64,000 nucleotides of DNA from Piromyces finnis finn. Lineage: Eukaryota; Fungi; Neocallimastigomycota. The position numbers and the translations under genes are program-made. Below the pieces are notes generated by a model, which ran no database searches, was not told where the DNA came from, and saw nothing but the letters and a program-made list of their open reading frames with translations. The stretch spans positions 62,001-126,000 of the forward strand of contig MCFH01000028.1 in NCBI GenBank assembly GCA_002104945.1, written 5' to 3'. Positions 42,512 through 46,139 of this stretch are shown piece after piece; position 1 is the first letter of the stretch, and each line of letters opens with the position of its first letter.

Positions 42512-45500
42512 ATGTCAACCATTATTCCACAAATTGCTTGTAAGAATTCTTTTTTTATACTACTATTTTTATTATTTAATGATATAAATTACATTAATAA
42601 ATATTAACGTTAACCTGTTTTTTATTGTGAATTTTTTTTGACAGACCGTTCCTCTGAAGGATTATCAACTGCTTTAGGACCACCAGTTAATCAATTTTAT
42701 AATCTCTTCAAGACGTATGCAATTTTCTACTTTTTTTTTTTTTAGAAAAATTAATAATAAAAATTTTCAAAAATAAAAACTAATTTTAATTATTTACAAA
42801 ATCTATTCTAATATTTAATTAGCGTCCCAAATGTTAAATTATATCAATACACTTCTGATGGTAGATTCTTAGGTTATGTTAATCAAGATGGGTATGATTA
42901 GTGGCTTTAAAAAATATTAAATATTAAATTATATGTTATGTATTATTTGTATAAATATATTAATAATTTCATTCTTAATTATAGTGTTACTATTCTTGAC
43001 GCTATCTCATATGAACCAATTCGCGAATTTAAGAAGACTAATGTTATTGATATTAACTTTTCCCCAAAGGGAAAATTCCTCGCTCTTTACACAAAATTCG
43101 GTAAATACCTACTATTGTAAATCATTGAATAATGAATTGCTTTGTATTCGGGAACAATGCAAACTAACAATACAAATAATAATCAAAAAAAAAATTTTTT
43201 TATATCTTTTATGTAATTAATTATTAAATAAAATTATGAACAAAAATAGTTAAAAGTCAAGATCCAGATATTCAACCACACAACATGTTCATTTATGAAG
43301 TTAGTACTGGTGAATTAAAGATCACATTCGTTCAAAAATCACAAAACAATTGGAAAGTTCAATGGACAGATGATGAATCTGTTTGTGCTAGATTAGTTAC
43401 AGGTGAAGTTCACTTTTACGATACTAGAAAGTTTGATCTTGGTAAGTTATCCTTGATTATTTATAAATCAATTATTTCTAAATCTAACCATTAAACTATA
43501 TTGAAATGAATAAACAAATAATTTATCTTTTTATGTACATTATATACACATATAATTTTGTTATTTTAATTTTTAAACAAAAGGTATTCGTTCAAAACTT
43601 AAATTACCACAAATGACTGCTTTTTCCATGTCTCCTGGTAGAACACCATCTGTTGCTGCTTTTGTTCCAGAGAAAAATGTAAAATGATATATTTATATTG
43701 TATATAGAAAATTGATATTCCTATCCTTATATTGTAATAATAACAATAATATATATATATTAAAATATAGGGTGTTCCTGCCTCTATTAGAATCTTTAGT
43801 CTCGGTAATTTTGAGGTTCCAATTTTAATTAAGACCTTCTTCAAAGCTGATAGCGTTGAAATGCTTTGGAACAAATTAGGTAATTAGCAAAAATTATAAT
43901 TATTTCTTATATTATACTAAAATTAACGATTTCATATTAATGATGTATTTTTAATTATATAGGTGTCAGTCTTCTTGTATGGACACATACTGAAGTTGAT
44001 GCTTCCGGTTTAAGTTACTATGGTGAGGCCTCATTATACTACTTTTCTATTGCAGGAAAATTTGAATGCCGTGTTCCAATTGGTAATTTTAAAAAAAAGT
44101 TTACTTGCTTATTTATTATTAAAAATATAAAATAAGTTATTTTAATAGTAATGAATACTCATTTAATATCAATATATACAAAATTTAAAATACAGAACCA
44201 GGAGCTCCTATTCATGATGTTTCATGGAGTCCAAATTCCAAAGAATTTATTGTTATTCACGGTTTAATGCCATCTTCCGCTACACTTTATGATTGGCGTG
44301 CAATTCCAATTTATGATTTCCCAAAGAATCACAGAAACTTTGTTAGATACAGTCCTCATGCAAGAAATATCCTTTACATAAAAAAAAATTAATAATATTT
44401 AAAACATTTTATTTATAATTATTTCATCCTTAATTCAAAATTGATCTTACTTATTTGTATAGCTGGATTTGGTAATTTAGCTGGTGAAATGGTAATTTGA
44501 TTGTAAACTTTTTTCACAAAATATTTGTTTTAATGTATTAAAAAATGTTTTTTAAAAAACACTATTTTATGAACAAGTAATAATAATAATAATAACTTTT
44601 TTTTTTTAAATTATACTTGTATAACAACAGGATTTCTTTGATAGATTGACTTGTCAAAAGGTTGGTCATGCTCAAGCTTCTAATTCATCATTCTGTGATT
44701 GGTGTCCAGATGGTAGACACGTTATTACTGCTACATTAACACCAAGATTACGTGTTGATAATGGTTTCAAGATTTGGCATTATTCAGGTGTTAAGCTTTT
44801 TGAATGTGATATTAAAGAACTTTATCAAGTAAATATTCATACTATTAAATTGAATCATAAAAACATTAATTGTAGATAGAGATAAGCTTTAACAATTTTT
44901 CATAATAATTATTTTTTAATATCAATATTATCTATAGATAAGCTGGAGACCAATTCATCAAGATGCCTTCCCACCACACAATAATTTATCCCCACCACCA
45001 AAGGGATTAATTGAAGATACTTCAAAAGCCACAGGTAAATTCATTAAAATATAATAAATAAATATGTAATTTTTTTATTAGTAGTAGTATGATAAAAATT
45101 TCAAATATTAATTTTTACATGATGGGTTTTATGATAAATAGAAAAGAAACCTGTTGGTGTTTACAGACCACCAGGTGCTCGTGCTTCTGCTTCAAATTTA
45201 TCTTTACGTGAAAACGCCATGTCTTCCTTATCCATGACTTCTAATGATAACAACGTAAAAGATGGTAAATTTATTATCTATTTTATATCTATACATATAT
45301 ATTGTATAAATTGTAAATATGATTTTATTATAAAATTGGTTATTTATTCATATTAAAATTTTACTTCAAAATAAAAAGACAACTTATTACATCCACCATC
45401 TGGTTTAAATAACAATATTAATAGTAATGCTAATAATCCAAAAAGAGCAAATATAAAGAAACAATTATCAAAAAGACAAATGAATCAAGGAAACATACCT

Positions 45501-45739
45501 GCCATGAGTCAAGTTAATAATACTAATGGTACTAATGGAAATAATGCTATTAATATTAATACAAAGAATCAGAATAAAGGACAAAATAAGAATCAAAATC
45601 AAAAACAAGCCCAAAATATCCAACAAAACAATCAAGGACAGCAAAAGAATCAAAACCAAAGTAATAGTGGTAGTACTTCTCCACAACAAACTATAAATAA
45701 CGTAAATAAGAAACCTAGAAATAAGAATAAGAACAAGGG

Positions 45740-45770
<31 letters not shown>

Positions 45771-46139
45771 AATGGTCAAGCTCAAGTTTCAAGCTTAAAC
45801 CAAAATCAAGGACAACAACAACAGCAAAGAAAGCAAAAGAAGTCCAAGTCTAGTATAGATTTACAAAATAAAAATAACAGTAAACCATCTTCACCAACCG
45901 GTTCATCAAATCAAGCCAGTTCTCCCACCGGTCCAAATAAGAATCCAAATCACGAAAATCAAAAGAAAATAAAGACATTACAAAGAAAGTTACGTGAAAT
46001 TGGTGAAATCAAAGCCAAGCATGCTGCTGGTCAAAAGTTAGAACATACCCAAATTATTAAGATGGAAAAAGAAAATGAATTAGCTAAAGAGTTAGAAATT
46101 TGTTTAGCTAAGCAAGTTCAAAATAACAATCAAAATTAA
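42512..46139 (+). CDS. EIF2A: Translation initiation factor eIF2A (WD beta-propeller) with a Q/N-rich linker, multi-exon
   Basis: PIHDVSWSPNSKEF, AGFGNLAGEM, WCPDGRHVITATLTPRLRVDNGFKIWHYSG, YRPPGAR, and C-terminal KKIKTLQRKLREIGEIK. Confidence 0.94.
44367..44450 (+). other. U12-type (minor spliceosome) AT-AC intron in eIF2A
   Basis: 5' site ATATCCTTT (44367-44375), branch TCCTTAAT (44427-44434), 3' end AC (44449-44450). Removal gives SPHARIICIAGFGNLAG in frame. Confidence 0.88.

Follow-up and report, generated by a model that had tools for sequence, protein, structure and literature searches.

The stretch of DNA analyzed here, a 64-kb window on the forward strand of a contig of Piromyces finnis, a member of the Neocallimastigomycota, harbors the gene for eIF2A. 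The coding region is divided into 14 exons and 13 introns and maps without a mismatch onto the public protein ORX48093.1 (P0001; 729 aa), an eIF2A-domain-containing protein of the same species, which was recovered with 100% identity over exon 11 when this exon served as the query of a profile-free search. The assignment to eIF2A follows from a full-length domain match, in which residues 211-404 of ORX48093.1 align end to end with positions 1-194 of the Pfam profile PF08662 (eIF2A) at 258 bits, and from the solved structures 8dys_A (human) and 3wj9_A (S. pombe), which are matched by individual exons. Exon 9 corresponds to residues 292-344 of 8dys_A, residues 269-322 of 3wj9_A, and profile positions 61-112 of PF08662. 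The window is very AT-rich, with about 12-33% GC in 2-kb bins, and an Rfam scan of its 64 kb revealed no RNA gene. The last eIF2A exon (45378-46136) encodes a long Asn/Gln/Lys-rich low-complexity tail, which is far longer than in Synchytrium and other orthologues and is typical for the AT-rich P. finnis genome.

Table. Features of the eIF2A locus and related loci in the P. finnis genome. Plain numbers are positions in the window; other features are given by locus (L) and by genome contig (G000:C).
Feature	Position	Strand	Basis or remark
eIF2A coding region	42512-46136	+	14 exons, 13 introns; equals ORX48093.1 (729 aa)
Exon 9	44196-44366	+	ends ...RYSPHAR plus base a, which opens an Ile codon
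U12-type AT-AC intron (intron 9)	44367-44450	+	84 nt, phase 1, about 10% GC; sole boundary pair reproducing the protein
U12-type 5' splice-site motif ATATCCTTT	44367-44375	+	sequence and motif search
Branch-site motif TCCTTAAT	44427-44434	+	motif search; pairs with the genome's own U12
Terminal AC	44449-44450	+	sequence and boundary test
Exon 10 (41 nt)	44451-44491	+	tt closes the Ile codon, then ICIAGFGNLAGEM
In-exon AG after TTTGTATAG (decoy)	44461-44462	+	resembles a good U2-type acceptor; acceptor implied by the Piromyces sp. E2 model
GT-AG intron after exon 10	44492-44630	+	boundary test against the public protein
Exon 11	44631-44828	+	DFFDRLTCQK...KELYQ; protein mapping, PDB and Pfam matches
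U11 candidate	L002:1501-1615		about 550 nt from the SNORD14-like snoRNA
SNORD14-like C/D box snoRNA	L002:2162-2325	-	52 bits, cut-off 64
U6atac/U4atac loci	L003:1501-1649 (G000:C112:211500-211648); L004:1494-1639 (G000:C90)	+ (both)
U11/U12-48K (SNRNP48) orthologue gene	L005 (G000:C1:1439545-1442619)	-	CHHC zinc-finger exon and DYKRRRKSYRAKNIKITK exon
SNRNP25-type ubiquitin-like domain exon	L077 (G000:C167:844352-844471)	-	35 bits
CENATAC/CCDC84, three collinear exons	L078-L080 (G000:C112:739085-740745)	-	sequence match
Eight further AT-AC introns	L057, L058, L059, L061, L066, L067, L068, L075 (G000 contigs C1, C2, C13, C112, C153, C161, C164, C189)		ATATCCTTT and TCCTTAAY motifs
71-nt repeat copies	G000:C29:18963-19033, C29:21318-21388, C64:9190-9260, C113:815079-815149, C113:817433-817503		U12-motif pattern match

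At intron 9, the forward strand reads ...cat gca aga a/ATATCCTTTACAT...TCATCCTTAATTCAAAATTGATCTTAC/tt att tgt ata gct gga ... ggt gaa atg/gtaatt, in which the codon of residue 324 (Ile) is split as a/tt, giving a phase 1 intron. Excision of the segment yields SPHARIICIAGFGNLAGEM, while reading on from exon 9 leads to a TAA after nine codons; thus, the segment cannot be coding. The boundaries were examined by taking every pair of positions within a few bases of each gap, joining the short flanks, and comparing the product with ORX48093.1. Exactly one solution, ATATCCTTT...TTAC, was obtained for intron 9, and GT...AG boundaries fit all of the remaining 12 introns. Both results agree with the sequence-only reading, according to which the other introns traced are GT-AG or GC-AG and no GT or GC donor can restore the protein at this place. 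No GT or GC donor considered here rescues the protein either; use of the nearest GT (44341) would remove the conserved VRYSPHAR and disrupt the frame.

Beyond its termini, the segment carries both signals of the U12 class: the 5' site fits /RTATCCTT from the first intron base, and the branch box fits TCCTTRAY near the 3' end. The branch adenosine lies at 44433 (or 44432), i.e., 17-18 nt from the intron end, where the earlier reading had also placed it; the optimum for this distance is 11-13 nt, so that 17 nt is slightly longer. Taken singly, neither motif exceeds chance in the window, since RTATCCTTT occurs at 6 sites against 3.2 expected and TCCTTAAY at 6 sites against 9.6 expected. In the proper order and on the same strand, the two are combined within the window at intron 9 alone, and the motif densities predict about 0.04 such pairs per window even before placement on exon boundaries is required. 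The five other RTATCCTTT sites are regarded as chance matches, which have neither a canonical TCCTTAAY branch motif nor a contrast between exon and intron; one of them has a relaxed TTCTTAAT 198 nt downstream.

Since ORX48093.1 is itself a model, the junction was tested against outside rulers, with the exons searched singly. In S. pombe eIF2A (3wj9_A), the last Arg of exon 9 corresponds to residue 322 and the first Asp of exon 11 to residue 337; the respective positions are 345 and 360 in human eIF2A (8dys_A) and 113 and 128 in PF08662, leaving 14 residues in between in each of the three. Removal of the AT-AC intron yields precisely these 14 residues, IICIAGFGNLAGEM, and is the sole excision that links ...RYSPHAR to them. 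The Synchytrium orthologue reads RIICLAGFGNLSGEMDFWDR at the junction. When exon 10 was read in frame with the upstream intron sequence and compared with the PDB, chance matches alone were returned.

A metagenome scan with exon 11 as the query additionally recovered five contigs (L006-L010). All 13 introns are missing from these contigs, which match the exons at 85-95% nucleotide identity and are therefore taken to be spliced transcripts of related anaerobic fungi. They represent RNA of relatives rather than of P. finnis, and these relatives are known here from spliced sequence alone. All five read ...CAAGAA/TTATTTGTATAGCTGG..., translated as SPHSRIICIAGFGNL, which corresponds base for base to the predicted junction, so that a shift of the intron by one base in either direction is incompatible with them. 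The AT...AC termini are thus fixed both by the single solution against ORX48093.1 and by the AGAA/TTAT junction in five orthologous transcripts. A sixth contig (L011), with 71% protein identity, has equal length at the junction. The more distant metagenome eIF2A loci (L012-L055) have no intron at the position of the AT-AC intron, which has no bearing on the ancestral state.

The sequence-only reading had further held that standard predictors would get this gene model wrong. This expectation fails for P. finnis, where ORX48093.1 contains RIICIAGFGNL and, thus, the exact 44366/44451 junction, but holds for Piromyces sp. E2, whose eIF2A model OUM62102.1 (P0002) reads ECRVPI/AGFGNL and thereby passes over exon 9, the exon in front of the AT-AC intron. 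Transferred to P. finnis coordinates, the E2 model would appear to link a GT donor at 44083 with the decoy AG within exon 10, which is unused in the five orthologous transcripts. In the same model, the middle part of the protein precedes its N-terminal third, which points to a scrambled model or assembly. For annotation, the E2 gene illustrates that AT-AC introns beside decoy AG sites cause exon skipping by predictors; consequently, the gene sets of Neocallimastigomycota need screening for ATATCCTT...TCCTTAAY...AC.

An intron of this class implies, as the sequence-only reading had pointed out, a working minor machinery elsewhere in the genome. A search of the P. finnis genome (56.5 Mb, 232 contigs) with Rfam models returned candidates for all four minor snRNAs named there. 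U12 (66.6 bits, cut-off 53) and U6atac (52.1 bits, cut-off 33) lie above their Rfam cut-offs, and U4atac (49.2 bits, cut-off 53) and U11 (38.2 bits, cut-off 39) lie just below; with these two marginally under the threshold, all four were counted as encoded. The U4atac candidate scores about equally on the U4 model but is distinct from the major U4, for which the genome has a gene of its own (89.9 bits); the major U6 is encoded by two genes. Its predicted duplex with U6atac amounts to -40.1 kcal/mol, compared with -24.8 and -27.4 kcal/mol for the cross pairs, which is specific to the cognate partners. The box GAGUAAGGAU of U12 is predicted to pair with AUCCUUAAUUC of the intron with one A bulged, and the predicted pairing with the eIF2A 5' site is weak for both U11 (-3.2 kcal/mol) and U6atac (-2.7 kcal/mol).

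The P. finnis U6atac has GCCGA in place of the usual AAGGA. The form [GU]CCGA is the published CC variant of U6atac, which has been described in cnidarians, Acanthamoeba, Physarum, moss, and oomycetes (Lopez et al. 2008, PMC2396436). A canonical U6atac copy was sought with AAGGAGAGA...TTAGCAC, and this search gave a single chance match (L056) that fits no Rfam family. The U6atac also reads UUGGCAC, compared with UUAGCAC in the Rfam consensus, which turns the AGC triad into GGC. Inspection by eye shows UGCCA in the U4atac partner, in place of the UGCUA of human U4atac, a difference that would preserve the pairing of stem I; U12 has a C at the opposite position. A SNORD14-like C/D box snoRNA, scoring below its cut-off, adjoins the U11 candidate.

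The protein search covered U11-48K, SNRNP25, CENATAC, and PDCD7. Three of these four minor-specific proteins were found: a U11-48K orthologue, the SNRNP25 domain, and CENATAC. For SNRNP48, one of the markers that the sequence-only reading had named, the DYKRRRKSYRAKNIKITK exon matches solely human SNRNP48, at residues 201-246 with an E-value of 2.3e-9. PDCD7/59K gave no match in the P. finnis genome. Taken with the snRNAs, i.e., U12 and U6atac above and U4atac and U11 just below their cut-offs, these proteins bear out the earlier view that the minor machinery is present.

The eIF2A intron has counterparts in the genome. The motif RTATCCTT-N30-60-TCCTTAAY gave 25 hits genome-wide, compared with 17 for a reversed-pattern control; as this raw count is uninformative, the loci were judged individually by open frames on both sides. 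Of the 20 loci fetched, 19 were distinct non-repeat hits and the remaining one represented a repeat family; at least 8 of the 19 show AT...AC ends with long open frames (34-133 codons) on either side. In these eight introns, the branch adenosine is 11, 11, 12, 13, 20, 23, 25, and 29 nt from the 3' end, several of the distances exceeding the textbook range. Their host exons include Vac14-like, BRCT, and POLR3C domains, the Vac14 and POLR3C matches being below the Pfam cut-offs. The repeat family consists of five identical 71-nt copies (GTATCCTTATGTATTTTCATAC...TCCTTAAT), which were set aside as a repeated element because they are devoid of flanking open frames and are not introns.

Based on these findings, a pathway for the removal of intron 9 can be proposed. 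The U11/U12 di-snRNP would bind the 5' site ATATCCTTT, where the U11-48K protein may assist U11 because the base-pairing of the latter is weak, and U12 would bind the branch site TCCTTAAT and leave the branch A, 17 nt before the 3' end, bulged. After displacement of U11 by the U4atac/U6atac.U5 tri-snRNP, cleavage at A/T...A/C would join AGA A to TT ATT, generating ...SPHARIICIAGFGNLAGEM..., a conserved β-strand of the eIF2A propeller.

Terminal dinucleotides by themselves do not settle the type of spliceosome, a few AT-AC introns of animals being excised by the major (U2-type) spliceosome, and the weak pairing of U11 and U6atac with the eIF2A 5' site could be read in the same direction. Such an origin is nevertheless extremely unlikely for the P. 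finnis intron, since its 5' site has the complete U12-type form ATATCCTTT and not a U2-type ATAAGT-like form, its TCCTTAAT box, with the branch A 17 nt before the intron end, is predicted to pair with the U12 encoded in the genome, its 3' site lacks a pyrimidine tract followed by AG, and the same pair of motifs is found again in other AT-AC introns of the genome. We infer that excision of the segment in P. finnis is the work of the minor spliceosome rather than of some other machinery.

The choice of acceptor deserves separate consideration because TTTGTATAG/CT resembles a strong acceptor. Joining the 5' site mainly to this AG would produce a 96-nt AT-AG intron and, with the reading frame kept, a protein shorter by four residues (ART-GFGNL), and the gene model of Piromyces sp. 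E2 takes the equivalent AG. However, the four residues would be lost from a strand of fixed length in the S. pombe, human, and Pfam eIF2A, the product of the AC site is present in 5/5 orthologous transcripts, and the AG is 29 nt from the branch A, making predominant use of this site very unlikely; splicing to it could be a rare by-product. A reading without any intron, in which the segment is inserted DNA, an artefact of the assembly, or a lesion of a pseudogene, has the missing GT-AG pair as its sole point and a vanishingly small probability: the rest of the gene is intact and matches the 729-aa public protein, the composition of the segment is intron-like (10% GC versus 38% in the upstream exon), and both U12 signals sit at its exact boundaries. 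With unique boundaries, the two motifs, the 14-residue fit, and the transcripts of relatives in agreement, the segment at 44367-44450 is almost certainly a U12-dependent (minor-spliceosome) AT-AC intron of phase 1. The sequence-only reading was thus right about the intron class, the eIF2A gene, and the host, an anaerobic gut fungus.

The novelty implied by that reading does not hold. In the survey by Larue and Roy (2023, PMC10639083), minor introns and minor snRNAs are already reported for P. finnis and Neocallimastix, and Dikarya are described as being without any. The eIF2A intron belongs to the same species, intron class, and machinery as the minor introns reported there for P. finnis and Neocallimastix californiae; it sits in an annotated model of the kind read by such surveys, and eIF2A is unnamed in the accessible text of PMC10639083. 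It is a real U12-type intron, but the public gene model already includes it and its class has been published for the species, which makes it one more example and no discovery. As a single-locus, independently checked confirmation of the 2023 survey, i.e., that a functional minor spliceosome persists in anaerobic gut fungi, it adds little.

Comparison with mammals is possible at the level of genes. VAC14 and POLR3C are in the human and mouse minor-intron gene lists of Olthof et al. (2019), and the P. finnis genes with Vac14-like and POLR3C domain matches likewise have AT-AC introns, a likeness that concerns the gene and not the intron position. EIF2A was not found in the accessible text of the same lists, which is possibly incomplete; thus, mammals may not share this minor intron of eIF2A. 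On this partial text, the stronger proposition, that the intron is not ancient and animal-shared and was either retained only in a fungal lineage or acquired as a rare lineage-specific gain, appears rather unlikely. Under this proposition, the intron might in addition throttle the production of eIF2A, a factor for non-canonical initiation, as minor introns are often described as slow to splice.

Like the U12-type AT-AC introns known from animals, plants, and early-diverging fungi such as Rhizophagus irregularis (Larue and Roy 2023), the eIF2A intron has /ATATCCTT at its 5' site and a TCCTTAAY branch box near the 3' end, terminates in AC, and is in phase 1. As elsewhere, the host is an old gene of core cellular function, and the genome contains U11, U12, U4atac, and U6atac. 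The P. finnis intron differs in its extremely AT-rich setting, its shortness (84 nt), and the distance of 17 nt between branch A and intron end. Furthermore, its cognate U6atac belongs to the CC-variant type with GCCGA, and the 5' end of U11 reads AAAAGAAAAG, which together account for the weak predicted RNA pairing with the 5' site. The eIF2A locus would offer a clean test intron for the recognition of a canonical 5' site by a CC-variant U6atac and a divergent U11.
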